From assembly GCF_032062105.1 (NCBI RefSeq), contig NW_026940558.1:1-64000 (forward strand): a stretch of 64,000 nt of DNA, read 5' to 3'. Positions 10,361-56,805 of this stretch are shown here, piece after piece (within the stretch, counting starts at the first letter, position 1; the number at the start of each line of letters is the position of its first letter). A program made the position numbers and the translations under genes. The notes under the pieces are model-generated. The model was not told where the DNA came from, searched no databases, and saw only the letters and a program-made list of their open reading frames with translations. The DNA is from Saccostrea cucullata. Lineage: Eukaryota.

Positions 10361-12610
<2,250 letters not shown>

Positions 12611-14904
12611 GGCTTATTAATTATTATTTTTATTGGAAAAAATATGAATAGTATGTTTATGCACCAATCTTTCATGTTATAGCAAATAAATTAATTTGAA
12701 CTGCAATTTATAAGTTTTTTATGACTTTCTTTAATTTTAGTGTAATTTTATATATCGTTTTAAACTTTGAAAACATGGTCATCTTCAGGGACTGTTGCCA
12801 TGGAAACGAACTCATGTACATATATCAAAATTGTTGTTTTTTGATCAAGGAACTTGTCCTCTATCTGTTGATACCCATTTTATAATTTTCCAATTACTTT
12901 TTTGTCAGGTTCACATATCCTTAACCAATTGAAAATGTTTCTATGCAATAACTACGTTTGCCATCTGACATTGTAAAAAAGGGTCAACATTTGGTCAATC
13001 AATTGTTAAAGCTGACATGAATTCTTAAAAACGCAACATTTTCATCTATGTACGACTTGTTTTATACCAACTATAGCCGTATTCCGCCATATTTCTTTCA
13101 GATACCTTGTCTCATTGTAACGATATATACCCGAAAGCGCTCGTTACAGTTGAATGATTTTTTGGTTTGGGTATCGACTTGTGCACATCTCCGATGGTAA
13201 AGCATATGAGAACACATGAGGAAATCAAGACATTTCTAAACCACAATAAGCATAATAATCATATTTCTGAATAATTATTGATTTGAATCAAATGTAATTC
13301 AAAAAAGAAAGAAAATGTAAGTTTGAAAGAAAGTTTTAGTTGCACGAGTACGCATTTTTACACTGCGCCAATTTATGCAGAATAAACATGAAATAAAAAA
13401 GCACTAAAACGCGTAAACACACTTTGAAATTACTATTATTTGAATAGAACAAAACAACCAGTGTCTTTGATTTGCAGGTTTTATGCAGACTTTGATGCAT
13501 ATCGAGAAAACGCGTCGAACGCTGTAAATGTACCCATACCTGGTAATAAGAACTCTGCATCGGTTCGAAGATGTGCACAAGTCAAGTGATATACACCCTG
13601 AATTCCATTTATTGATAAATGCAACACAAAAAAGAAATAAACTCCATAAAAATTCAAAAGTAAACACACTGTGACTACTCCGTTCAGCCTAGCACATCAA
13701 AACACTTAGTCCGTGCTGATCAGATTTTGGTCAGGGAAAATATCACAAGTGGAAAAGAGAATTTATTTGATATTTGCGCAGCTAAAAGGGGGGGGGGGGG
13801 GCTAAAGTATAATCATAACGACTTTATAAGGTACAACTGAAAATTGTCTATCTAGTTCTAATAAACATTCTATATATAGTCTGCAAAATTCATTTGTCAA
13901 TTACAACTGATTATTTTAGTACTAATCTCAAATCTAAACCAAGTAATTTGATATACGGTAATTATTTAGTTTAAGACTTAAAAGCATTTAACCAGAATAC
14001 AAAATTTTACGTGTAATTTGTTTGTTCTTTAACACACACGCGAAAAAAACATCCCTTGTTTAGATTGACATTAAGGCATTTGTATTTTTAAGGGGGGGGG
14101 GGCAGAAATAATTAACACGACCGTTACCTAAATAGTCTTGGAAGACAGACATCTCTGCCAAATCCATTTTTCGAGATTTTTTATTGCCTCACTCCGACCA
14201 CATTTAGTATGTGCATTTTTGCGGAATGTGGCTGTTTTATGATTATTACAGAAAGTCTTTCGAGATTCAGTATCCCTGTCTGAAAGTCTAGCTTTTTTTT
14301 CAAATAAAAATAATTTCTGTTGCAATATTTGGGAGATGTTTTTAAAAAGTAGGATAGGGATACTTGAAACCTGGTTGAATACAGATAATTTATAATCACT
14401 TTTTTATTCATTGAACTCTCTTTCTTCTCCTGTAACCAACAGTAAGCGCAATAAGAGATATAAAATCATATGCATTTTGTGCTGTACCATTTATTAGATC
14501 GTGGGACAGGTCAAGAATTTTTTTCAGGCGGGGATGTCGAAACTTGAAATAATTGAAATTGAAATTGAAATAATAATTTTACTTTTGACAAGAAAAATAA
14601 ACCTAAACGCCGAAATTGAAAGGGAAATAAACGTCAAATCTACATCAAAGGAATGGGAACATTGGGAACTTTCTCAAATACCTTCTAGCTCAGGTAAGGA
14701 ATCTGGACAAAATTAATTAAGACAAGAGGTATAAAAAAGCTAATTTTTGGAAGAATGTGGGACTCTCATCGGCAGTTTGCTATCCTTTCCTATATGCTTC
14801 GACTATTAACATTTTATGTCAAGAAATATAACTCACATTCAATTCCAGGGGCGGATTCAGCCATTTTTAGAAAGGGGGGATTCCAGGTCGGTGCCCTCAG
14901 CACT

Positions 14905-40822: not shown

Positions 40823-41834
40823 ATAATTTGTCAGTATTAATTTGTGTTCTATGGACTAAGATGTCTTCATGAAAGTTAACAGAAAAAACCAGGTTGCAGG
40901 TTTTAACAAATCAAATTTATGTGGGAGCATCTTCATGGCATAAATTCAGATTAGTTAAAATCATTAAGAGTTCACATTTTTTTTCTGATCACATTTTGTC
41001 CGTCCGTCCGTCTGTCTAGCTATCCTTACGTAAACTTTTCACATCTTCGACTTCTTCTCAAGAACCAATGGACCAATTTTTACCAAACTTGGTACAAAGC
41101 ATCTTTTTCAATAAATTGTCATAATTACTATAATTATTATGTGTTCTATGGACTGCGGTATCATTCCGAATATTGACAGAAAAACCAAGGTTGACAAATG
41201 AAATTTATGTGTTCAAATCATAAAGAGTTCACATTTTTTACAAAAAAAGACTGCTGCTGCAAACCAGGTTACATGCAGGGTTGACAAATCAAATTTATGT
41301 TGGAACATCCTCATATGGCGATAATTCAAATAAGTTCAAATCATAAAGAGTTAAAAACAGCATATGTCAATGTCATTCATGACATATTAATTTGCATTCT
41401 CTGTAAGCAACAAAATTCGTAAAACAAGTTTCTCCTATTTTGATGAAAATTGCAATAGGTGACACATTCCCTCAATTCTAATTTTTATGGTTAGGTAATT
41501 ACCGTAATGTAAAACCAATAAGGTAACAATTTGAAGTTCCTTAAAACATGTAAAGAAGTAACATATATACTAGTTGTCTCGGTTGCACAAATTTATCATG
41601 CATGATGGCGCTGTATCTCGTTTTTTTTTTAAATCCACTCAAGAATTTACTAAGACATCATTTTAGACATACAGAGTGTATTTTGTAAATTGAATATGTA
41701 AAGGAAGTGATGTATAAATTCTTTTCTTCCTGCTGAATTGTCATGAATGAAATAAGTTATTTTTTAGATCCTTTATGTTCTTCATGACCAGAAGCTATGT
41801 CTTTTTTCTGTCACCCTCCTACCGTCTGCTAATT

Positions 41835-43009
41835 TTTAGGTCACCTAGGTGACCTATTGCTACTGTTTTCGTACGTCGTTCATCGGTCGTAAACTTTTGA
41901 ACATTTTAGCTTCTTCACTGGAACCACTGAACCAATTTCAACCAAATTTGGTATACAGCATCTATGGGTAAATGGGGAACAAAAATTAAAAATTTCATGA
42001 TCCCTTGGGCCTGAGGGGTGGGGCCAAAACTACTAAAATTAATGCAATCCCAAAAATCTTCTTCTTCACTCCTGGACATCAAGCAGTCGAACTATTGACA
42101 TGATTGTAATCATCATTGAGTCCTACCAAAAATTTGAAATTCATCAGGGGTCAGGGGTTCTGGTGTTTCTGGCAGGGGGCTAGATAGATTATAAAGTTAA
42201 AGTTTATTCTTTCTTTGAAAATCTTCTTCTCTGCTCCTGGGTATAAAACAAACTAACCAAGGACATAGTTATGATGACCAAGACTGCCTCTTCGAAAATT
42301 GTGAATTTCATGGCCCCTGGGTCAGGGGCTCTGATGTTAAGGTTGTACACTATTGATTATATTGTGAAAATGCATTAATTCTTAGAAAATATTCTTCTCT
42401 TCTTATAGGTATTAAATAAACCAACTAAGTAAATAGTCATGATGAGCAAGAGTGTCTCTTCCAAAATTGTGAATTTTTTGGCCCCAAGGTCAAAGGTTCT
42501 GGTGTTAAAGCGGGGCTCTATTGATTATATAGTGAAAATGCATTATTTCTTTGAATATCTTCTTCTCTGCTCCTGATCATGAGTATTAAATAAACTAAGT
42601 ACATAGTTATAATGAGCAAGAGTACCTTTACCAAAATTGTGAATTTTATGGCCCCATGGTCAGGGGTTATGGTGTTAGGGCGGAGCTCTTTTGATTATAA
42701 TGTGAAAATGCATTAATTCTTTGAAAAATCTTCTCTGCTGCTCCTGGGTATTAAACAAAATAATTAAGTACATAGCTCTTCCAAATTTGTGAATTTTATG
42801 GCCTTTTGGTCAGGGGTTCTGGTGTTAGGGCAGGGCTCTATTGATTATATAGTGATAATACTAGTACATTGATTCTTTGAAAATCTTCTTCACTGCTCCT
42901 GGGCATTAAACCAATGAACTATGAACATACTTATGATTAAGAAATCAAAATTGTCAATTTCATGGCCCCTGGGTCGGGTGTTCTGGTGTTAGGGTGGGGT
43001 TCTATTGAT
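41835..43009 (+). mobile_element. HINE element with ~166-bp tandem array (about 6 units), 3' end missing
   Basis: 5' ttttaggtcacct..aggtgacctattg, with repeated aaaattgtgaatttcatggcccctgggtcaggggttctgg units. Cut at 43010 by another element end (cagacctggggtcaattac). Confidence 0.8.
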
Positions 43010-44848
43010 CAGACCTGGGGTCAATTACTTTGAAATGTAATGCATTAAATTACAATTTCTTTAGAATTTTTATCATTACAATTAAAATTACCATTACTCT
43101 CATTCAGAAAAGTAATTAATTGAATTACAATTACTTTGTTAAAGTAATGAATTACATTACATATTACATTTTATAAGAGAAAAACACAAAACGTATGACC
43201 ACACAACTTATACCTATAAATTAAATTTCACAGTTTGTGCTCGATTTTAAATACACTCTCCCTCAGATCTATTAATCTGAGCGGTATTAGGAGTTTTTAT
43301 TCATGTATCTGTTTATGTAGTTTATTAATCCAATATACAGTTGACAAAGAAAGTGGATCAGAACACTTTCTACAATATTGTAGTTTTGTTCAATATAAAT
43401 CAAGTATTAAAAAACTTAATGGATTAATTAGCACTTCTAATTAACTAAACAGGTTTATTCATTCTTTCATTTATTCTCTCAAAAAAACATATACATGGTA
43501 CAAGAGGTACATATATACATATTTACAATAACTATGGACGAACAGAAGTTACAGAAGGACAGAGTCAAAAAAATTGGTAATAAATATACACAATTTTCGT
43601 AAAAATGATGGATCTGTACTTGTCATCAAGTTACAAAATTTAATCATATTTGGATTTACATAGTATTTCTGCAACAAAAAATCCTTTCGGGTACTATTTA
43701 ATGCATTTTATTAAAGTAAATTATGGAATTCGTCTCCTATCTGATTATTATTACATAAATTGCACACTCTTTCATTTCTTCCAACATTTTTCCATCTACT
43801 CATCTTTATTGGAAGACAATGGTTACATGTTCTGAATTTTGAAAGGATATTTCTAAATTTTCTTGGTAGAATAGTTAAATATTTTTCACATTCAAACTTT
43901 GTTTTAAAAATTCTATATGTAATACCTTTACTGGAATTATTCATATCACTATACCATTTTTGTAAAAACTGGTCTTTGAGCTTTTGGTTTATTGTGGTTG
44001 CAATCCATTTAACACTATGAAAAGTTTGATTAGTCCAAATATTACAGAGCCCCTTTGTATTTTAAAAGAATATTCTGTATGAAAGATATCCAAGGATTAC
44101 TAATCCCATTTTTAGTGTATTTATTATAAAGATGTAAATAAATAAATCTAAAGATCTTATTCTCATTTCCATGTATCAAATTTCCCCAGTAAGATATCAT
44201 TCTTGTATAAATGCGCACATGCCTCGGGTAACATAACGTCCAGTTTCCCCGTATACCATAAAACTCGGTGTAATTCTACTCGATTTTAAGTTTAAAATAT
44301 ATTTCAAAAATCTTAAATGTAGACGTTCGATTTCGATATATAAATATTTTCAAATCCCCATATTTCACATCCATAAAACAAAACAGGAACAACAACTTTT
44401 TCAAAGAGATCTAGCTGACAGTCCAGAGATAGATTATATAAACGATTTTTTCTTATAATGCCGTACATTGCCTTTTGCGCTTGGTTACGTAAGTGTTTCT
44501 TGGCCTTTGAAAAAGACCCTGATCTTGTGAATAAAATACCTAGGTAATTGAAATCTTTAACAGTTTCTAAAACATCGTCATTGTATTTAAATGTATTTTT
44601 GGGGGGTTGTCCTTTTGAAAAAATGACAATTTTTGTTTTCTTAACATTAACATGGAGTTTCCACGTTTTGCAATATACAGAAAATTCATTTAATGCATGT
44701 TGTAAATTATTTGCGGTTTCAGCTAAAATAACCGTATCATCAGCATAAAATAAAATAAACAGCTTGATAAAAATGTTAAAATTATCCTCAATCTCTTTTG
44801 AAAAATTCTCTAAACCGTTAACATTCTTAGTTATTGATATACAATGAA

Positions 44849-45880
44849 AACAAGCATTACGAAAGTATTTCATAAGCAATACATGTCCCCTACCGGGTTC
44901 CCCTTTTCTCTTCGGGGTTTCATTTATTAGAGCCTGTGTATGAAAAATTGTTACTTAAATATGGACATGTCAGTTATTACTTGAATATGAATGAAATGTA
45001 TTGGATCTGCTTTACAAGGAAAGACTCGTGACGTCTTTGAATGCTATTTGACACACACACACATGCTTTGATCAGAACAGCTGAGTTTACATGGTTGAAC
45101 AACAATTTTGTTCCAGAAAAAAATCAATCTTGATCTATATTTGTCACTATAAATGTATCCAGCAAGTTTCAAATCATGATAATCTCGTTTAGAACATTAA
45201 TGCAGTAGTGCATCACGACATTAATTTAGTGCATCACGAACCCTTTTGTGAATCCAATTATTAAATAAAAAAAATAAAAATACCACAATTCCTTCAGAAA
45301 TGAATGAAGTAGAACGAAATGCAAACTTGATCTATAACTTATCAATATATAAAAGCTATCCAGCAAGTTTCAATTCATGACAATCTCGTTTAAAAACATA
45401 AATTGAGTGCATCACGACATTAATTTAGTGCATCACGAACCCTACATGTATATTTAACCCAATGATAAAATTAAAAAAAAAAAAAAACAAAAAAAAAAAA
45501 ACATAATTCTTTCAAAAATCAATTAAGCAGAACGAAATGCAAACTCGATCTATAACTAATTAAGGTAAAGTCTCATACTAAAAACCAGCTCAATATTTGT
45601 AAGCGTCAAGGAGAAAAGTGCGGAAAACCCTTAAAAATTGAAAAGGCCGTAATTCCGTAAAAAATCATTGAATCGGAACGATATTCATATTTGATCTGTA
45701 ACTTATCAAGATACACCCACGTACCAAAAATCAGCTCAATTTCTGCCAGCGTTTAGAATAAAAGCGTGGAAAACCAAGTGGGACAGACTGACAGGCAGAC
45801 GGGGACAGACAGCTAGACAGACAGACGGACAGACGCAGAGGAAACCTATAGTCCGCTCCGGTTTCACCGGTAGGGGACTA
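44849..45880 (-). mobile_element. HINE element inserted into the LINE RT
   Basis: Reverse-orientation copy of the 37471-37989 family, with internal tandem units. Confidence 0.8.
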
Positions 45881-48215
45881 ATAAAAAAGGTGAAAGATTT
45901 TCACCAAGTCTAACCTTAACATTGCAGTTGAAAAATTCAGAAGACACACCATTCACGTTAACTCTTGACTTTATGCCTGCATACATATTTCTAATATAGT
46001 TGAAACACTTCCCACTAACACCGTTTGAAAATAATTTGTACCAAAGATCGTCTTTCCATACAGTGTCCTGTTTACAGACAGAAATCCTGTTTAGAATCGA
46101 TGAACGCACAGTATAACCTTTTTTGCTATTTATATGGGCTTGTGACAGAAAATGCATTATCAATATATAGTCTAAAGTAGAATATCTCTTTCTGAAACCT
46201 GTTTGACTCTCATTTATCAGAATGATATTTTCTGCATAGATTTCTAATCGTTTTTTCAAAATACTCGTAAAGAGTTTCCCTTAGCAGCTCAACAATGTGA
46301 TCGGCGATAGTTCTCAGGTTGTGTCGGATCTCCTTTATTTTTATAAATAGTTTTACTTCCGGTGTAACGACGAAAAGTGACCCCCGTAGAATATTGACCA
46401 GGGGGTCATTTTTCTACGTAGAAAAATGACCCAGGGTCAATATTCTACGACAAATGGGGTCATTTTTCGACCGTAGAAAACCATTCCAGACCAGTAATTC
46501 TACGACTACACACACGTTGAAAAATGACCCCCATAGAAATTTGACCCCCTCCATTTTTATAAAATAATAAAACTTTACATCTGTGTCTCCTGAGATTTTG
46601 TTATACTTTCAAATGTAAGGAGGAGGGGTGTACTTTACTCCTTTCATCATATTTGATGGCATAAATTTAAAATGGCATCGTATTAAATCGATGTACCTGG
46701 TATGGAGGGTTTTTTGTTTGCATAATCTCAATGAATAATACTATTAATTTATTGAAGAGCATTAATTTATGACTATATTCTGTGTGTTTTTTCTCAATCA
46801 AAGATTCTGTTCCTATTCTGGTATGATGCGTATGTATCTGATAACCATAAGCTTGTACAAAGGCCGCCGAAATTAGCACTTTTCATCATTTGAATTCAAT
46901 TTTGAAATATTTACAAAACCAAAAAAGATCGTATAGAAGTTAGAAAAGCAATGCACTACATAAAATCAATTCCCTTAGTTCTTACATTTAACTTACATAG
47001 GATTGGATGCATTCTGCTTTAAAATCACAGGCACTAGTTTGACCCATAGTATAATAACACAAGGTATCTAACTCCGATTTACACCGAGTACCCCCCTCCC
47101 TTACAATCGCGCTCGTGTACACTTTCAGAGGAAATGCACGGGTAAACTGTTTATACCTATGTCTTCAACGATAATTTATCTACACAACCATATCTGACAT
47201 GCTTGTCTTTATTTTCTTTTATCTCCGTAATCAGCGGCAAAACTCTGCTCGTCGAGTGGAAAGTAAAACTGTACAATATAATTGGATGTTCTAATCTCGG
47301 GCAAACAGAAAAATTAAAAAAAAAAATTTTGCCTATTTAGGTAGTTTAATATACACTTCTTGGTATGGATAGTGTAACTCTTTTGTAACATCATACCCAA
47401 AACCGTGAGCGCTACGGGCTGTATCCTGTTGTTTTCCTATCAATCAAAATTGTTTTTAAGCATTATATGTAATATTTTAAATAGTTAATTTAAAAAATAC
47501 TATAGTAATATAATTCAGCAATAATAAAATTTGTTAAAGTCTTTATAAATATAGCAGAGCAGACCTGCATATAACTGAATTGCAGCATTGTATCCCGTAT
47601 CAGACTCGGCTACAGACAAATATATAGTTTCGCTCCCTATTGATGAGATTTTTTGGCAGGAACATACTGCACGATTTCGTTTTTCCCCTTTAGAAAAAAA
47701 AAAAATTGATGCTCATTTTTCGAAATTTCAAAAACAAATGTTTGGGTATTAATATGTATTATTTGAGTGGGTTAGGGGAGATTTTTGTGTAAAAATCTAT
47801 AGATAGAATTTACCATAAAATTGTAAGATCTTAGAAAGGTTGTAATTAGTACACTGTACTTCACTTATAATTACTTATATGGCAATTCCATATAATTATG
47901 GTTAAAACGAATGGAATTTAAAAGTTTACGTGTATATAATTCAGAGAAGAGTACTCCGCTTTACGGGTTATTTCTTAGCTAGAGATCTGCCGTATGCTTA
48001 ATGAGTGACAATTTTGAACCCAACACATTTTTCAACAGTAATAGGTTTGTGTGTGCCGTGTGGTGAAAGGACTTAGCATGATTTTTTTTTCAGTGACAAT
48101 TACTTCACATCAACAGTAATATCCCTTGCTTAAAATGCTTGTAAAATTGGATGGCCACGTGGAACACCGTATTGTCATTACAATGCAGAAATTTTGATAG
48201 AAGTTGGAATCTGTC

Positions 48216-51200
48216 TGTGCGGAAATAGTTAACCATTAAACACACACCCGTGTTTTGAAAGGACAGGTACTGGTTAATTCAACCCAAAAATTATTCGTAT
48301 GATAAGCATCACACTCCCCGCCTGAATTGTAAGTAAGTACAATTCACATGTACATAAAACTCAATGCAAAAATTCTTAAACAAAATGTCAGTTAAACCAA
48401 CAGATACAGTCTGCATAGCAATAAACACTGTCAATACATAGAAACAAGAGGTACAATCTGTGTTACTGGTCTAATGTATAAAGATGTCTTTCCATCTTTC
48501 ACAGTCTTTACTTGAACCTTTCGAACGCGTTTGTCCTCACTTGGAAATGTTTTCACCACAATTGACAAAGGCCATTGATTTCTAGCACAGTTTGGATCGT
48601 TCAAAAGAACTATGTCCCCTTCGCAGACGGAGGGTTCATCAGATTTCCATTTTCGACGTGGTTGAAGATTGTGCAAATATTCACATTTCCAGCGAGACCA
48701 GAAAGTATCGGCTAAACTCTGTACGCGTTTCCACTCGCTCTTCAGAATGTCCTTTGAACTGAATGATCCAATAGTGTCTCCAACATCATAATTGTGAGAC
48801 TTCTGCGTGAGTAATAGCGATGGTGATAGTACGGTGGGGTTATCTGGATCACAAGATACAGAGGTAAGAGGTCTGGCATTAACAATGGCTGATACCTCAG
48901 CCATCAGAGTGTTCAATAGATCATGAGTCAAAGTATGCTGATTTGACAGCATCGAGTTAAGAATCCTCTTCACCACCCCAATCAATCGTTCCCATGCTCC
49001 ACCATAATGTGCAGAATGTGGTGGGTTGAATATCCACTTAGAGTTGGATGATATTAAGAACCTCTGCACAGAGTCCTCCTCAACATTTACACGGTCAATG
49101 GCTAGATCATCTAAGGCCCCAATAAAATTTGTGCCTCTGTCAGACCGAAAAATCTTCACTGCACCACGCATAGCAATGAAGCGTCGTAGTGCGTTTATGA
49201 AGGCAGCTGAACTCATGGAGTCGACTAGCTCAATATGTATAGCTCTGGTCACCAGACACGTAAACAGAATTCCCCAACGCTTAGAATTTGCACTGCCCCC
49301 GCGAGTCTTTCGTGTCACTACTTGGTAAGGCCCGAATGCGTCTACCCCAACATTTGAAAATGGCGGTCCTGGTTCTAAGCGGTCCGCTGGCAAGTCAGCC
49401 ATCTTTTGTGTGGAAAGGCGACCCCTCATTTTGCGACAAGGTACACAAGCTGATATCACGGAAGATATCAATCGCTTACATCGAGTTATCCACAATCCAG
49501 CAGAACGAATGACACCTTCGGTAAAGAGTCGGCCTTGATGGGAAACTTCATGATGGTAGTGTCTGACCAATAGCTCAGATATGTGATTCCGACCAGGGAG
49601 AAGTATCGGATGTTTAGATTCAAATGAGAGGAGGGATTTTGCTAAACGTCCACCAACCCTGATAAATCCATCGTTGTCCAGGTATGGATCTAAAGATGAT
49701 ATCTGACTAGTTTTTGAAACAGCTTTGCCAGTCTGGAGGCAACAGATTTCTTCTGGGAATGCTTCCTTCTGAAATTCTTTGAGCACATGATCATGCGCCT
49801 CATGGCGAATATCCACAATACACACAGTCTCACATGGCTGTAAATTTCCCTGACTTCGACGATTTTTCCACTGACGCACAAAAAGCTTCAATCGAGCTAT
49901 CGCATTGACAACAGACTTCCAACGTGAAAAACGCTTGAATCGGGATATACCGAGTCCATGAGTTGGTGCAACACTTGTCATCAGACAACTAGTTCGAATT
50001 TCTTTGTCGGAATCTGGATTTAGCAACTCAAAGGAAACTGGTTCCTTGTCGGTTTCAACAGATGGTGTTGGTCCTCTTAACCATGCACTATTTTGCATAG
50101 CATGGGCGTCAATTGATCGTGTACCATCATCTGCAGGATTCTTGTCTGTGGGTATGTAACTCCATTGGTGTGGAGATGTGGTTGAGTGAATTCTAGCGAC
50201 ACGATTTGCAACGTATGTGTGAAAACGGCGTGATGTATTAAAAATGTACCCAAGTACAATCTTGCTGTCTGTATGGAAACGAAAGTCCTGTAGAGATATA
50301 TCTAAGTGTTGAGAGATTGTTTCAGCAATTTCTACTGCAAGAACTGAGGAACAAAGTTCAAGCCGTGGAACAGTATGACCTTTCAAAGGCGCAACCTTTG
50401 CTTTTCCGAGAATGAACCCCATATGTGTTGGGTCTGTAAGATCAGTAAGATAGGCAACAGCGGCTATTGCCTTCTCGGAGGCATCGCAGTAGATATGAAC
50501 TTCCTTCTGATCGCAACCAGAATACGACACTGGTAAGTATGGTCGAGGAATTCGCACATCATAAAGATCGAGCAATGAACTTCTCCAACGATCCCACTCT
50601 GAAAATAACTCTTCCGGAAGTGGTTCATCCCAGTCAACAGTTCCATGGATCAAGTCTCTGAGCAGGAGTTTCCCTTTGATCACAACAGGTGCCATGAAGC
50701 CCAACGGATCATAAATACTATTTATCGTGGACAAAACACCCCTTCTTGTAAACTGCTGTTTGTCATGGGAAGAACGAAACAAGAATGAATCGGTACCTAG
50801 ATCCCATTTAATGCCCAAACTCGCCTGAACTGGAAGACAATCCTTCCGCAAGTCAAGGTCCTTAATGTCTTTGGCTAGATCGTCAGTGGGAAACGCAGCC
50901 ATGACTTCATGGTTGTTGGACGCGATTTTATGCAAGCGAATATTGCCACCTTGCATCAGAGCTGTTTGTGCATCCTTGACAAGAGTAATCGCACTACTAG
51001 GTGTGGGAAGCGATGCGAGTCCATCATCCACATAAAAATCCTTGTGAATGTACTCAACAACTTTGGGTTCCGCATCTTGAACGCAAAGTCTTAAGCCATA
51101 GGTGGCAACGGAGGGCGAAGGCCGGTTCCCGAATACATGTACACACATTCGATATTGCACAAGGGGCTTGTTCAAATCACAGTCCTCATGCCAAAGAAAT

Positions 51201-54200
51201 CGTAGATAATTTCTATGTTTCGGCTCAACGCGGAAGCAAAAGAACATTTGCTGGATATCTGCGAGTATGGCTACGGGTTCTCTTCTGAATCGCATCAAGA
51301 CTCCAAGAAGACTATTAACCAGATCCGGTCCAGTCAACAGAACATCATTTAACGAAAGTCCATTGAACTTAGCGGAAGAGTCAAATACTACACGTGCCTG
51401 GCCTGGCTTCTGGGGATGGTAGACAGCAAAGATTGGCAGAAACCAACATTCTTCCTCTGGTTGTAACGGAGGAGCCCTCTCTGCATGACCGTTTTTGAGT
51501 ATCTTTTGCATGAATTCAATGAAGTGTGAGGCCTTGACAGAATCGTGCAGTAGACTCCTTTGCAAGTTTCTGGCTCGCTTGAATGCCATTGAATAGTTGT
51601 TGTCCAGTCTAGGTCGATCAGGTCGAAATGGTAGAGGTGATGTCCAGAATCCTTGTTCATCCTTATAGAATCCTGCTCCAACTATGTCTAGAAATTGTCG
51701 ATCCTCCACAGACATGCCCTCTTTCTCATCAAAAGGTGTTTTCAGGAAAACAGGATCGTCGTTCAAACGAAGAACACTCTGACAAGGCTCCATATAGGTA
51801 GGACGTCCATTTGATAATATTTGTGTCTTCAACACGTTGATGCGAGGTGGGACGTGACAACTTCCAAGGCAGGTTTCTCCCACTATGGTCCAGCCTAGAG
51901 GTAATCTCTGTGCAATTGGTTCAATGTCGGAACCAGTACGTTGTTCAAGCACATGGTGTGCCTTCAAAAGGTCTCTTCCAATCAATAAGGAGATGCTGGC
52001 CTTAGGATCTAATGGTGGTATGAACACTTCAATGTCAGAAAGATGTGAGTATGCTCGTGCAACTTCCGGTGTTGGGATCTCACTTCTGTTCTCTGGTATG
52101 AATTCACACTCGGTTACTATTGGCAGATCAAGGCAAACTGTTCTGTCCAAAGATTCTACGACTAGTCCAGATACACGTCTCCCCCATGTGTTAACTTTGC
52201 CTGTGCATGTAGACAAAATGTACGGAGACTGGGTACAGCCAACATCGAGCTTATCAAAGAGATATGGGGTGCCTAAAGTACTGGTACTCTGGTCGTCAAT
52301 AACAACGTAAGTCTTAAACGCATGTTCTACATGATCTTTAGGGTAGATCCACACTAACTGTATCTTCGCACATGATTTGCCAGAGAATCCCTCGCCACAG
52401 ACTGTGGTGCATGCTGCCACAACTTCATCAGCCACTGCTTTAGGTTGAGTCTCCCCGCCATGCGAAGTTGGTAAGTTATGACAGTCACTGTAAGTAGACC
52501 TCTTATCAAAAACTCCGTCCTCATGAAGAGCTGTAGGATGTGCACGCTGACAAACGCTACAAGTAACCTTCTTTTAACACTTTCGAAAGTCATGTTTTTG
52601 AATTTCACAGCATTTCAAACATATCGTTTTTGAACGTAGAAATTGTCTGCGTTTTTCAATTGTCAAAGAGCGAAAGGCACGGCACTGATTGAGAGTGTGG
52701 TTCGAACTCTCATGATAAGGACAGGAAGCTAGCTTGGTATGCAGTTCGGTCTCTTCGGTATCCTTAGTAACTGATGTCTTTTTAGCGGCTACATGTATTT
52801 GCTGTAAAGTCTGTGTTTTCGCCTTCGTCTGCTGACCATAAGTTTGCTGCGATTCATACATAAATGATGGATTATTCTTAATCCTTGCCATTTCCTTCAC
52901 AAACATCAAAAACTCTCTGAATGGAGGATACACAGCACGATAAGTGGTCTGATATTTTGCGGCTCTGTTTGTCCATTTTTCTTGGAGAGATGGCGGTAAT
53001 TTACAAACAATTGGCTTGATCCCCGATGAAGAGTCATAGTACGCAAACTGACTGGCATTAACTGGGTCATCTTTTAAAGAGGCTACTTCAGACAGTAGAT
53101 CTGCCAACTCGTAAAGTCTCTTGGGATCCTTGAGAGTTATTTTCGGAAAATCACTAATACGCAATTTTAAAGCTGATTCTAACATTTCAGGTGTTCCATA
53201 ACACTCGTCAAGCCTCTCCCAAATCAGTCTAAGTGCTCGGCTTGGATTGTGAGGATTTGCATTACGTATACGTAGAGCGGAAACCTTGGATTTACTTCCT
53301 AAGTAGCGAATCATGAGGTCAGCTTGATCAGTCTCATCCACATCCATATCTCTCATAGATCTCAAAAAGTTCGATTTCCAAACTTGGTATGATTCAGCAG
53401 TATCGTCAAATTCCCATTTTCGCTTTGACAACAACTCTTTCTTTAACATGAAAGTGACAAAGTCATTGGCGTGATCAGTCGAAGCACGATGTAGTGAATA
53501 ATCCAAATTTGTAGAGTCCAGTTGACGTGGAGGTTCAAAGGATGCAGTAGTTCGTTGTAGGTAAGGGTGAAATGTTGGGGCTTCTGGTCTTAGTGTTGAG
53601 CCGGAGTTGTCTTTGGTGCTTCTGATTCCGTTAATACGCCTCTGTTCTTCCAAGTGACTTTGGGCAAGTTCAGATTTCACAGTATTGCCATCTAAGGCAT
53701 CTGCAGCAGCGTCAGCCATGGCAGCCTCCTTTTTAAGAGATACACGACGAAGTTCAGTTTCAATGTCCAAAGCTTTCCTTTTAAGTGCGGCTTCCTCTTC
53801 CAAAAACTCCATGGCAGCCCTTGCCGCCTCTGCCCTAGCTCGCTTGTCTTCTGATGAACGATTCGATGATCTTCCATTGACACTACTGCGAGTGTGTAGC
53901 GAATCAATTTCTAGTCTAGCTTTAGCACGCTCCAGCTTCATCAAGGTTCTCTCCACTAGAATATTTTTCAAAGTTCGATCATCTTGGACCCTCTGGTAAA
54001 GCTCTAAACTTTCTTTTGTGTAGCACTTATTTAAATAGTCAAGGTGATGATCTATGAGATCAAAACACTTTCGGGACTCCGCATTTAGTCCAAGCTCTGT
54101 TATATATGGGTCATCACTTTCATTATAGTTAATGAATGACGTCACAATTGTCCATTGATCCTTGATCTGTTGATCAACCCGATTAACACGCGACTGGAAT

Positions 54201-54731
54201 TCCTCATTCTTTTTTCCTGTAAATACTCTGAGACGTTTACTTTCTGTACCTTCTACAGATTCTAACTGATGTGAGGTATCAGCTGTAGAGGGTTGAATGT
54301 TATCCGAGGTTGGATCCATTTTGGCTGATTGGCTCATAATAAGTCCTTTTACTGTGCTGGTATAGTCGGGGACGTCACAGCCAGTTAACCATTAAACAAG
54401 GAACACACATGGATTTGAAAACTGTATTGAATAGGTTTGTGTGTGCGTGTGCGTGTGGTAAAAGGACTGTATGTATGAAACACTTCTAAATTTAAAAGGT
54501 TCAAATACAATGAAACAAGAAATTCATCAAATATAATGCTTGTACAACGCACAAGAAATTAGGTGAATTCCAGCAATTTCAATTTTGACAGCAAACAATA
54601 TGTGCATTTACCTGAAGCTAATAAACATTCAAAAGAGACTAATTTTAATGCAAAAATATAAAAACAAACAAACCCTTTTTACAGGTACTGGTTAATTCAA
54701 CCCAAAAATTATTCGTATGATAAGCATCACA
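48216..54731 (-). mobile_element. Bel-Pao LTR retrotransposon
   Basis: 5' LTR 54353-54731 (TG..CA), shortened and garbled 3' LTR 48216-48313 (51 nt identical to the 5' LTR start), PPT caggcggggag, 5-bp TSD CTGTC at 48211-48215 and 54732-54736. Confidence 0.9.
48431..54337 (-). CDS. Bel-Pao gag-pol polyprotein (gag, Zn knuckles, protease, RT, RNase H, integrase) with one in-frame TAA at 52574-52576
   Basis: ORFs 52574..54337 and 48431..52435 share a frame (CLKCCEIQKHDFRKC*KKVTCSVCQRAHPTALH..SHGGE). Motifs: IDDQS, FYVDDGL, YCDASEKA, TVPRLEL, GVDAFGP, SDRGTNF, GGAWERL. Confidence 0.9.
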
Positions 54732-56805
54732 CTGTCTCTTGTCATGACTTCCGAAAATCCCGGTGTCCGGAATAGCCAAGAATTTTCGGACTGCTGCCAG
54801 TAGGTTTCTGTGCTGGGTTTTTTGACAACACCCATCGAAAGAAACAATCCTAAATAAGCAGACATTTCCTCGGCATCCGTTAAGTACCATCCATGTGTTC
54901 TAGAGTTTGGTTTTATAAGATGGATCTGTTAAAAATTGTTCTGCATACAATTCGTTTCATCTACGAGAATGTCGATAAGTCCTTTTCTGTCCTCTGGATT
55001 GGAAAGTTTTCTGAAATATTCTATTGGATGAGCCTCTATGTCCGTTGGGTCAACGGGACCCATATGCCGTGAGAACGGAAGGATATTGTGCGGATAGTCA
55101 AAATTTCCACATACCGTACGTTTGTCCACAATCTATTGATTTCTGGAATATTTTATTTATATCTGCATCACTTTCTGCGTCTGAATCTTCGGAAATATAA
55201 TCATAATCAGACTCATTGTCTGAAGCAGAATCCATATTGTCCAAATCACGCAAAATGACGTAAGAATGCCGATGACGTCATTTTGGACAATTTTTACGGG
55301 AACTTGTGTGTCTTGAGTATCATTATATAAGTTATAATACTGCTAGTTTAGTATAAAATATTTGATGCAAAATAATATTTTTTCAATTAATTTAAATATT
55401 AGATTTTTTTCAATGTATTATCATGAAAATTTATTTAAAAAACCCAAAATTTCAAAAGATGATTATGCCTGAAAATTGATAAAAATAGATCTCAAGTTGG
55501 TTTCTTTATAAAATAAGTGATATAGATCCTATATGGATAAAGTGTTAATTTCCTTAAAAAATGTACTAGTGTATTAAATGCTACGTAAATTCAATAACAC
55601 TATAATAAAGTATTTGTATACTAGCTCAATTATTTTTAATAAACCAAAGAGATTTTATTTCAATTGACAAGTGATACTAGTAATCAGAATTTAATTGGTA
55701 TGTAAAATTAAAATTAAACCAGATCCGAAAAAGTATGAACTTTCCTTAAGCTTACAGAAATGATCACATCATATTATAAGCTTACCTGTGTGCATTCGCC
55801 TAACAAGAATATTTCTACCAAAACGAATGTTTTTGCATCAAAAAATGACAAGGAGTCATTATTCTACGGGGTCATTTTTCTACAACACACACGGAGAAAA
55901 ACGACCCCAAGACCATAATTTCTACAGAAAAGGGGGTCATTTTTCTATGTAGAATATTGACCAGGGGGTCAAATTTCTACGTAGAAAAATGACCCCCGTT
56001 CAATATTCTACGGGGGTAACTTTTCGTCGTTACACCGGTACTATCCCAGAGTCAAAGATAAAATTAAATAATTTTTCGTATATAGACAGGAACAAAGAAA
56101 TGGTGGTACTAATATGTTCGTTTAGAATATGATCACTTCCGGGAGATTTGTTGTTTTTTTAGGTCTTTCACTGCCGACAAAATTTCATCTTGCGTAATTG
56201 GACAATCAAGTGTTTCATTATATCTACTTTGCTCAGTGAAATTAATTGAATCTGTTTCCTCTAAATCGACCTCATTGATATTTTTGAAGAAGTTAAATAG
56301 ATTGTTCAAATCAGCTTTACATGTGTCATTTTTATTTTGGCTATTTAATATTTTCCAGTATTCCTTTGTGTTGTTTGTTCGCAGTTTTTTAATTTTCTGA
56401 GATAGATCTTGTCTGTACTCAAGTATTGATGAATCCATTACTTTTTTATACTCTTTGCTAGCTAGTTTTAGATTCTTTTTAGATTCTTGGGTTTTAATTC
56501 TATTATGCATTCGTTTAGCTATTTTTTTTTCTCGCTGTTCTGCAATAACGATTGAACCAAGGTTTATCGGGTTTTTTCTTTGCATTTGGAATTTTATGTT
56601 TAATCCCAAACGATTCTTTGATTGTGCTTAAAAACACACTGCAAAGTTTTGACATTACATTACTCTAATGCTCTTTTTCCAGCCCATTTTCCAAATTTTT
56701 CTTCTTTAATTTTCGCAGTGTATATTTATAGCGATCTATACTAGCACGAAAATCGTCTGCTTTGTTTGCACACCATAATTTCACACTTGGCTGATCTTGT
56801 GTTTT

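Follow-up and report, generated by a model that had tools for sequence, protein, structure and literature searches.

Probable Tf1-like self-priming in a Bel-Pao clade of Saccostrea cucullata, with a primer predicted to be assembled by splicing of an intron in the long terminal repeat

We analyzed a stretch of 64,000 nucleotides of Saccostrea cucullata DNA (NCBI RefSeq assembly GCF_032062105.1, contig NW_026940558.1, positions 1 to 64,000 of the forward strand), referred to as the window, which carries on its minus strand a copy of a Bel-Pao retrotransposon with long terminal repeats (LTRs), and compared this copy with its relatives in the same genome. The element and its relatives probably form a clade in which reverse transcription is self-primed in a Tf1-like manner, the primer being assembled by splicing of an LTR intron; we put the probability of this reading at about 0.72. 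The core idea, a self-priming primer-binding site (PBS) in Bel-Pao, is well supported by the sequences. The more interesting finding is that the self-primer of the intact relatives seems to lie in two separate pieces on either side of an LTR intron; the PBS corresponds to the complement of the predicted exon-exon junction, and both pieces covary with it. The case is built on sequence architecture, on covariation and on one DNA copy from which the intron-like segment has been removed precisely.

The window copy belongs to a family referred to as family A and consists of the following parts, in which R and U5 denote the repeated and the unique 5' region of the LTR, and ORF an open reading frame.

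54353 to 54731, minus strand: 5' LTR, 379 nt, starting with TGTGATGC and ending with CCAGCACA at 54353
54458 to 54468, minus strand: AGTCCTTTTAC, the exact complement of the PBS, uninterrupted here only through a deletion of about 115 nt
54353 to 54457, minus strand: rest of R plus U5, between primer sequence and PBS, with AATACA at 54428-54423 and a hairpin CTGGCTG...CCAGCACAG adjoining the PBS
54342 to 54352, minus strand: PBS GTAAAAGGACT, beginning at the first base past the LTR and followed by TATT
52574 to 54337, minus strand: gag-like ORF, 587 amino acids (aa), ATG at 54337, with an in-frame stop at 52574-52576 (..DFRKC*KKVTC..)
48431 to 52435, minus strand: pol, sharing the frame of gag and listed with 1334 aa, with Pao peptidase (aa 563-724), integrase core (aa 1052-1141) and DUF5641 (aa 1234-1330)
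48314 to 48323, minus strand: polypurine tract (PPT) AGGCGGGGAG, preceding the 3' LTR
48030 to 48313, minus strand: 3' LTR remnant, lower boundary approximate

A Pfam profile search of the window pol identified Peptidase_A17 (PF05380, E 1.3e-43, 149 bits with a cut-off of 22.3), DUF5641 (92.7 bits, above its cut-off) and rve (26.1 bits, below its cut-off of 32.6), and these three domains together make the element a Bel-Pao. No chromodomain was among the domains found in this search, which places the element outside the Ty3/gypsy chromoviruses of the Tf1/sushi type; the gag-like ORF of the window copy gave no Pfam match. The C-terminus of the polyprotein of a family-B element (L044) aligns with the DUF5641 end of the window pol. 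As expected of a Bel-Pao element, the LTR has TG..CA ends and a PPT precedes the 3' LTR, which is truncated in the window.

The sequence-only reading of this DNA had proposed that the 5' LTR is followed directly by a PBS that is not of the tRNA type, with an exact complement inside the LTR, and both observations hold. The LTR end is followed by GTAAAAGGACT (54352-54342) with no TGG adjoining it, the 11-nt complement AGTCCTTTTAC lies in the LTR at 54468-54458, and TTTTAAAT (54497-54490, 22-29 nt upstream of AGTCCTTTTAC) and AATACA (54428-54423) are found where that reading placed them. The LTR edge is real: the copies L002, L004, L015 and L018 diverge directly past CCAGCACA, and in 3' LTR copies a PPT ending in GGCGGGGAG lies ahead of the LTR start TGTGATGC. 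When one mismatch is allowed, the 11-mer occurs six times in the window compared to a mean of 1.42 in shuffled sequences, and 0 of 100 shuffles reached six; the only two exact sites are the LTR/PBS pair itself. The complementarity of about 11 nt between the post-LTR sequence and the upstream part of the element's own transcript, which characterizes the Tf1 type, is 11/11 in the window and 11-13 nt over 13 lineages if the two halves described below are counted together.

Family A is small in this genome of 1.17 Gb. Alignment of eleven other LTR copies with the window LTR indicated a full length of about 613 nt and two losses in the window copy (a slash marks a predicted splice border here and below). 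One loss, of about 79 nt, has taken the exon-1-like end and the GTAAGT donor, including the block ..TTTGGCCTACTACAGTGTAAGTTTTGAC. The other, of about 115 nt between ..CATACATACGCAGTATTTT and ..TTGTAG/CCTTTTACC, has taken the 3' end of the intron-like part; these nucleotides are present at that spot in nine other copies, and the two further copies have a larger internal deletion. In full family A LTRs, AGT stands before the donor and CCTTTTAC after the acceptor (TAG/CCTTTTAC), giving only eight contiguous complementary bases, and the continuous 11-mer with its spacing to TTTTAAAT is confined to the window copy. The TATA-like motif lies next to the 11-mer in this copy only because about 115 nt have been deleted there, and the transcription start proposed at 54468, with a TATA box 22-29 nt upstream, therefore has to be given up as the product of a copy-specific deletion. 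The wider proposal of Tf1-like self-priming in Bel-Pao survives in that the PBS is not tRNA-like and its complementarity is kept by compensatory change, but not in its original form, as the 11-13-mer is discontinuous in the DNA of intact relatives. With a GTAAGT...YAG segment lying between its two parts, it could equal the start of the RNA (the first 11 nt, the situation in Tf1) only if the first exon were no longer than 2-5 nt. An LTR intron had been mentioned as a caveat, which pointed in the right direction, but the donor is the conserved ..ACAGT/GTAAGT block lost from the window copy and not the GTAAAT named at the time. The window copy is a relic and not a working example: it has lost donor as well as acceptor, and its 11-mer is uninterrupted in the DNA. 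The origin of its junction (CATACATAC-AGT-CCTTTTACC) is ambiguous, either reading taking two events.

A few further observations concern family A. A bulge model (AG-CCTTTTAC pairing with one bulged A) was dropped after tails other than AGT were found beside donors. Copy L030 seemed to be a counter-example with the LTR motif and a different 'PBS', but its post-LTR sequence is another repeat that also occurs upstream in L045, which makes it a solo or 3' LTR. A search for intron-less LTR copies with the window stretch ACAGTCCTTTTACC gave seven exact genome sites, and the six others as well as the one site examined out of about 480 with one mismatch were unrelated. Two near-identical copies, L003 and L005 (C1921, C21973), carry donor, acceptor and PBS with an intron-like part of 127 nt (internal deletion); they may be one locus assembled twice.

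A search with the gag N-terminus identified two distant relatives (29-30% identity), both with GTAAAAAGACT directly past an LTR ending in ...ACA. The LTRs of both contain a T-rich tract, CAG and then CTTTTTACC, and ..ACAGT/GTAAGT about 320-420 nt further upstream. If these ends are read as donor and acceptor, they give AGT/CTTTTTAC in the distant relatives and AGT/CCTTTTAC in the window family, each the exact complement of its own PBS. Below, the piece before the donor is called the tail and the piece after the acceptor the head. In three genome searches with patterns of open positions, elements accounted for 4 of 4, 7 of 10 and 3 of 4 matches, with 0, 1 and 3 matches in the respective controls; mixed combinations of head, tail and PBS were not found in these searches. 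A search with family-B gag produced 104 matches, and many of these have open frames of 1900-2060 aa. For 12 of these matches 931 nt upstream of gag were taken, and the 11 that were read added eight lineages, resulting in a set of 21 junctions of 5' LTR and PBS from 13 lineages (L110 stands outside the set).

The same rule applies to 18 of the 21 junctions. A head of 7-9 nt stands immediately after AG and a tail of 3-5 nt immediately ahead of GTAAGT or GTAAAT, and head and tail together complement 11-13 nt of the PBS of their own lineage. The segment from tail to head measures 244-529 nt in full copies, with a T-rich tract and YAG at its downstream end. Its ends are of the spliceosomal type, with GTAAGT in 11 lineages, GTAAAT in 2 and YAG after a T-rich tract in 13. 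The two halves were scored against the PBS separately, and the only continuous forms used were natural ones (the window and L109), not joined exon models. The predicted junctions and the PBSs are as follows.

Lineage A: junction AGT/CCTTTTAC, PBS GTAAAAGGACT
Lineages B-E: junction AGT/CTTTTTAC, PBS GTAAAAAGACT
Lineage F: junction CATAA/TCTTTTAC, PBS GTAAAAGATTATG
Lineage G: junction AAAT/CTTTTTAC, PBS GTAAAAAGATTT
Lineage H: junction ACACT/TTCTTTAC, PBS GTAAAGAAAGTGT
Lineage I: junction AGC/TTCTTTTAC, PBS GTAAAAGAAGCT
Lineage J: junction TAGA/TTTCTTAC, PBS GTAAGAAATCTA
Lineage K: junction AAGA/TTTCCAC, PBS GTGGAAATCTT
Lineage L (C14103): junction AAT/CTTTTCAC, PBS GTGAAAAGATT, split in the 3' LTR and joined in the 5' LTR
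Lineage M: junction TGGA/TTTTTTAC, PBS GTAAAAAATCCA

Ten different PBS sequences thus occur among lineages of one genome. Seven of the eight added lineages keep the predicted intron in the 5' LTR, and the eighth (L) has it only in the 3' LTR. Separately, we observed that the base after the predicted 3' end of the primer is C in 12 of 13 lineages (the last base of ..TACC..), and that a GGTTA(A/T)C-like motif recurs in U5, which could pair with ..TTACC and may be a further helix.

Covariation of PBS and LTR motif in related lineages had been suggested as a check, and compensatory change is indeed kept over the 13 related lineages of this genome. In a cross-lineage matrix, tails match the PBS of their own lineage by 3-5 nt in 12 of 12 lineages, compared to 3 of 112 pairings with a foreign PBS that reach 3 nt and none that reaches 4 nt (pairings of A-E among themselves, which share AGT, are left out of the 112). 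The heads covary too. AG directly precedes the head in 12 of 12 lineages, and the pyrimidine fraction at positions -20 to -4 before the heads is 0.71-0.82 with a background of 0.55. The LTR ends were fixed independently of the PBS, namely by many copies (family A), by LTR pairs that are 99.5% identical over 630 nt (B), 99.7% identical over 662 nt with target-site duplication (TSD) CTATT (F) or 94% identical (K), and by TSD TCGAT (L); the PBS starts at the first base past ..CA in A, B, F and K and past ..TA in L. Between head and LTR end, 12 of 13 lineages carry a canonical AATAAA and lineage A carries AATACA, and this position of the poly(A) signal puts the primer sequence in R. The gag ATG was located in 12 lineages, 10-44 nt past the start of the PBS. 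At L044 (C18271, 787-790) and L107 (C6013) the first 4-7 bases of the 5' LTR are unlike the TGTA.. start of the 3' LTR of the same copy, the rest being 94-99.5% identical. For the CCCTTTAC subfamily (L015, L024) the pattern search had no matches, which gives no result either way. Eight matches in a viral contig collection were all due to chance, and metagenome contigs gave no match and then three chance matches, so that no relatives outside this genome were among them.

A trace of intron removal in DNA was found in lineage L. The young element C14103 has a 2003-aa frame and a PPT and is flanked on either side by the TSD TCGAT. Its 3' LTR reads ..CCCACAAT/GTAAGT...301 nt...TTGTAG/CTTTTCACC.. 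(extended: ..CTCTGCCCACAAT/GTAAGT..CTATTGTAG/CTTTTCACCG..) and its 5' LTR ..CCCACAAT/CTTTTCACC.. (extended: ..CTCTGCCCACAAT/CTTTTCACCG..), from which exactly the GT...AG segment is gone. The parts shared by the two LTRs are 99.4% (172 nt) and 98.8% (84 nt) identical, and the matching TSDs indicate one insertion and not a recombinant of two elements. A loss that is precise at the GT..AG borders is what splicing would be expected to leave behind. Folding of natural continuous leaders placed the primer/PBS duplex in both the minimum free energy (MFE) and the centroid folds, for the window leader (the 11-mer/PBS duplex) with z -2.36 and 3 of 200 shuffles as good, and for the intron-less C14103 leader with z -1.25 and 24 of 200 shuffles. 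In 12 of 13 single-sequence folds the dot-bracket strings show, by our own reading, a hairpin whose end lies 2-5 nt ahead of the PBS. Extra structure in Tf1 self-priming is reportedly the subject of Lin and Levin 1998, judged by its title.

We propose the following mechanism for intact members. The spliceosomal-type intron in the LTR (GTAAGT ... T-rich tract plus YAG) would be removed, and splicing would join the last 2-5 nt of a short exon 1 to the first 7-9 nt of exon 2, yielding the 11-13-nt complement of the PBS. The spliced leader would then fold back, or pair in trans, into a junction/PBS duplex, the RNA would be cut at the 3' end of this duplex (between ...UAC and C), and the new 3' OH would be extended through U5 and the rest of R. 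The resulting strong-stop DNA would move to the 3' R, where the intron is still present, and the intron would in this way be passed to the progeny LTRs. Finally, plus-strand synthesis would copy the primer back into the PBS, by which PBS and junction would stay matched. The scheme follows Tf1 by analogy; cleavage, priming in cis or in trans, the transcription start and obligatory splicing are inferred. Whether splicing is obligatory we consider an even bet: as a licensing step, it would ensure that only the intron-less leader bears a continuous self-primer, the intron would survive via the unspliced 3' LTR, and the PBS would be rewritten from the junction in each cycle, so that both drift together.

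RNA data bear on this model in part. RNA runs contain 0.77-0.84 of the sampled words of the young family-B element L044, which shows that it is transcribed. RNA on L044:487-3570 was taken from two contig runs (13 and 9 contigs) and two raw oligo-dT runs (67 and 32 reads). Six reads enter the LTR from the PPT side, indicating that they originate from the 3' LTR, and the 3' LTR copy is mostly unspliced, as the model needs. The LTR of L044 shows no cluster of read starts in the four runs. In the four lineages with a known LTR start, the LTR before the donor contains common TTCCGG/TTTCCGC-like and GGCCAT-like motifs, which resemble the ETS and YY1 sites of TATA-less promoters and are mentioned as a lead only.

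Several points weigh against splicing-dependent priming. No spliced junction was found in reads or contigs of the four RNA runs on L044, which are of low depth and 3'-biased. The intron-like part has a depth of about 6-17 (X22), one contig (X2) runs unbroken from pol through the PPT and an unspliced LTR into the PBS and gag, and splicing is at best a minority event in the sampled RNA. Depth over the PBS and the start of gag is below 1, with the 5' copy essentially unsampled; coverage of the 5' leader is too thin to decide on splicing, which is the main weakness of the case. A transcription start upstream of the donor is no more than likely, judged from the architecture: where the LTR start is known (four lineages), the donor is preceded by 131-202 nt of LTR. 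In the 5' copy, the poly(A) signal between primer and PBS has to be passed over. An extra event would be required for C14103 to have unequal LTRs, since standard strand transfer gives two identical LTRs; a second, spliced RNA may have been copied, the LTR may have been a heteroduplex, or conversion by complementary DNA may have followed later. Three junctions depart from the rule: L006 has uncompensated changes in head and PBS (its gag contains stops), for L078, whose frame is only 210 aa, about 700 nt contain no donor preceded by a matching tail, and in C14103 the halves are continuous in the 5' LTR. One of the 12 upstream regions, L110, was unreadable. Lastly, all 13 lineages are related and come from one genome, and A-E represent a single junction type.

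Self-priming might also proceed without splicing. The head alone could serve as primer, with transcription starting near the YAG as in classic Tf1, or head and tail could both pair within a three-way junction that spans the intron-like segment, one arm each, and splicing, if it occurs, would be unrelated to priming. The missing junction reads and contigs agree with this, as do AT-rich stretches 15-31 nt upstream of the YAG and a helix formed by head and PBS alone in 9 of 13 MFE folds. We nevertheless consider it unlikely. PBS positions 9-13 covary with the tails, which in every case adjoin GTAAGT or GTAAAT, and the heads always adjoin a T-rich tract plus AG, borders that are predicted if the two pieces become contiguous after splicing. 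In C14103 the halves are joined in DNA exactly at GT..AG. A three-way junction is compatible with the sequence alone.

Quite improbable, in our assessment, is that the complementarity of junction and PBS serves splicing control, translation or packaging, with priming achieved by other means. The duplex does lie near the gag start codon, and no priming intermediate has been seen. On the other hand, the complementarity starts at the first post-LTR base in every lineage, including those with LTR pairs and TSDs, which is where the 3' end of a primer must sit because that position defines the LTR edge, and no other candidate PBS (TGG...) adjoins the LTR.

A host RNA is a very improbable primer. It could be the 5' half of tRNA-Lys(UUU) cut in the anticodon loop, as for copia with tRNA-iMet, or another small RNA, the LTR motif being a mere resemblance. 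By our own reading, C[C/T]TTTTAC can be taken for a UUU anticodon loop, and half-tRNA priming is known in Ty1/copia lineages, according to the accessible part of PMC6317226. The PBS was checked against tRNAs, and no tRNA match was found at sites of the PBS complement or by arm pattern. In 1.17 Gb, the 14-mer complementary to the PBS is found exactly at 19 sites, three of which are element PBSs; none of the 16 non-element sites lies in a tRNA gene, and ARAGORN predicted no tRNA in the 19 loci scanned (these 16 and three one-mismatch sites). A pattern of anticodon arm and T arm containing the primer sequence had one match that was not tRNA-like, compared to nine in the control. An Rfam tRNA search of the genome scored 63 of about 101,000 candidates, and the tRNA negatives rest on the matching sites and the arm pattern. 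The tRNA priming of the Belpaoviridae is thus not seen in these elements, with no TGG and no tRNA at matching sites, and a Lys(UUU) tRNA half was rejected on the basis of the same sites, the arm pattern and the ten PBS types, whose number in one genome does not fit a host RNA primer. Most of the 14-mer matches belong to an abundant interspersed repeat, ATAAGTCCTTT[TC]AC followed by TTCGGAGTTCCGAATGAC (also ..AAAAAGATAAGTCCTTT[T/C]AC followed by TTCGGAGTTCCGAATGACAATGAAGACTGAACG...), with about 1000 sites (G000; examples L047, L050, L053-L056, L060, L061 and L063). This repeat was set aside: ARAGORN does not call it a tRNA, and nothing links it to the element.

That the match in the window arose by chance in an AT-rich LTR can practically be dismissed: the perfect 11-mer is indeed limited to the window copy, but 0 of 100 shuffles reached the observed count, and the clade-wide rule and the family comparison contradict it.

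The window copy itself is old or rearranged and is broken in at least three ways (unequal LTRs, in-frame stop, truncated 3' LTR). The first 50 nt or so of its 3' LTR remnant equal the 5' LTR, and the remainder is diverged or rearranged, with neither the intron-like part nor a recognizable LTR end; the remnant carries an uninterrupted 10/11 copy of the 11-mer, AGTCCTTTCAC, at 48073-48063. We considered whether this is a clean spliced LTR, since the intron-like part is absent in the alignment, but the 31 nt before AGT/CCTTTCAC are unlike the end of exon 1 in the family, and no claim is made. One flanking feature was identified.

54734 to 54928, minus strand: fragment of a piggyBac-type transposase ORF (DDE_Tnp_1_7, E 3.4e-10, profile positions 30-80, an open stretch of 65 codons)

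The piggyBac-like gene is the insertion target of the element and no part of it, the ORF stopping where the LTR begins. Its continuation beyond the element was not found in 44000-48100. Palindromic 64-nt units (GTAGAATATTGACC..GGGTCAATATTCTAC) flank the element at 46386-46449 and 55917-56012, 9.5 kb apart, and could be ends of a DNA transposon or of a miniature inverted-repeat transposable element. Elsewhere in the window, two minus-strand ORFs (44313-44879 and 45864-46259) contain reverse-transcriptase-like motifs (..FYADDTVILAE..) and are presumably fragments of a non-LTR retrotransposon. At 134-2007, a 74-nt unit is present in fourteen copies, spaced mostly by 96-105 nt and 60-70% identical, which look like repeats that code, on the minus strand, for a repeat protein. 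Two regions, 10592-12650 and 41027-43023, contain tandem arrays whose periods are roughly 166-172 nt and 377 nt; a core similar to GGCCCCTGGGTCAGGGG recurs in the upstream part of locus L076.

If the reading is right, a self-priming Bel-Pao clade would bring the mechanism to a third superfamily, suggesting that it has several origins or a greater age than assumed. With a primer formed only by splicing, two processes that retroelements normally keep separate would be tied together, spliced RNAs usually not being the replicating ones, and the question arises how one RNA can be spliced in the 5' repeat yet unspliced in the 3' repeat. Should splicing be obligatory, this would be a retroelement that needs spliced and not unspliced RNA to begin reverse transcription. 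Annotation pipelines that demand a tRNA PBS would mislabel such elements, and the junction rule offers a means to recognize them, and to predict their splice sites, from sequence only. The open-access papers searched contained no report linking Bel-Pao with self-priming or with a primer split by an LTR intron, the search not extending to the supplementary PBS tables of PMC6317226 and PMC13524379. The main text of a BEL/Pao survey (PMC3118150) has no occurrence of PBS, tRNA, primer binding or intron.

According to the accessible parts of PMC5341516, PMC4600332, PMC10085805, PMC6317226 and PMC6934838, self-priming is established for Tf1 and Tf2; for the Tf1/sushi group, plant Tcn1 and copia TAR it has been inferred. 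The elements described here resemble Tf1/Tf2 of Schizosaccharomyces pombe and the Tf1/sushi group in having no tRNA PBS, in a post-LTR sequence that pairs with the element's own upstream RNA in R, in a duplex of about 11 nt and perhaps in further helices between primer and PBS. The Tf1/sushi elements are Ty3/gypsy chromoviruses, in contrast to the Bel-Pao elements described here (Pao peptidase, DUF5641). The primer of Tf1 is the continuous 5' end of the mRNA, whereas in the Bel-Pao elements an intron-like segment divides it in the DNA, and it would span a predicted exon junction. Extra helices around the duplex are needed in Tf1, as described in the accessible part of PMC10085805, and the hairpin before the PBS, predicted here from single-sequence folds, recalls them. 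For the plant Tcn1 chromoviruses and the TAR lineage of Ty1/copia (Houba, Osr-1), self-priming was likewise inferred from complementarity outside the founding group, in elements that are not Bel-Pao and for which no intron in the primer is described in that part of PMC6317226 to which we had access. Canonical Belpaoviridae (Bel/Pao, genus Semotivirus) are alike in gene content, LTRs and PPT but are tRNA-primed, according to the accessible part of the ICTV profile (PMC8742986), unlike the elements studied here. Elements with half-tRNA priming (copia; plant Osser, Bryco and Bianca) share a PBS without TGG and a primer whose 3' end is internal to an RNA, whereas no tRNA match was found here and the PBS varies by lineage together with the LTR. 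Precise intron loss mediated by reverse transcription is a known concept. The 5' LTR of C14103 resembles such cases in lacking exactly the GT..AG segment, and differs in that the loss lies inside the LTR of a retroelement, where it creates a continuous primer.

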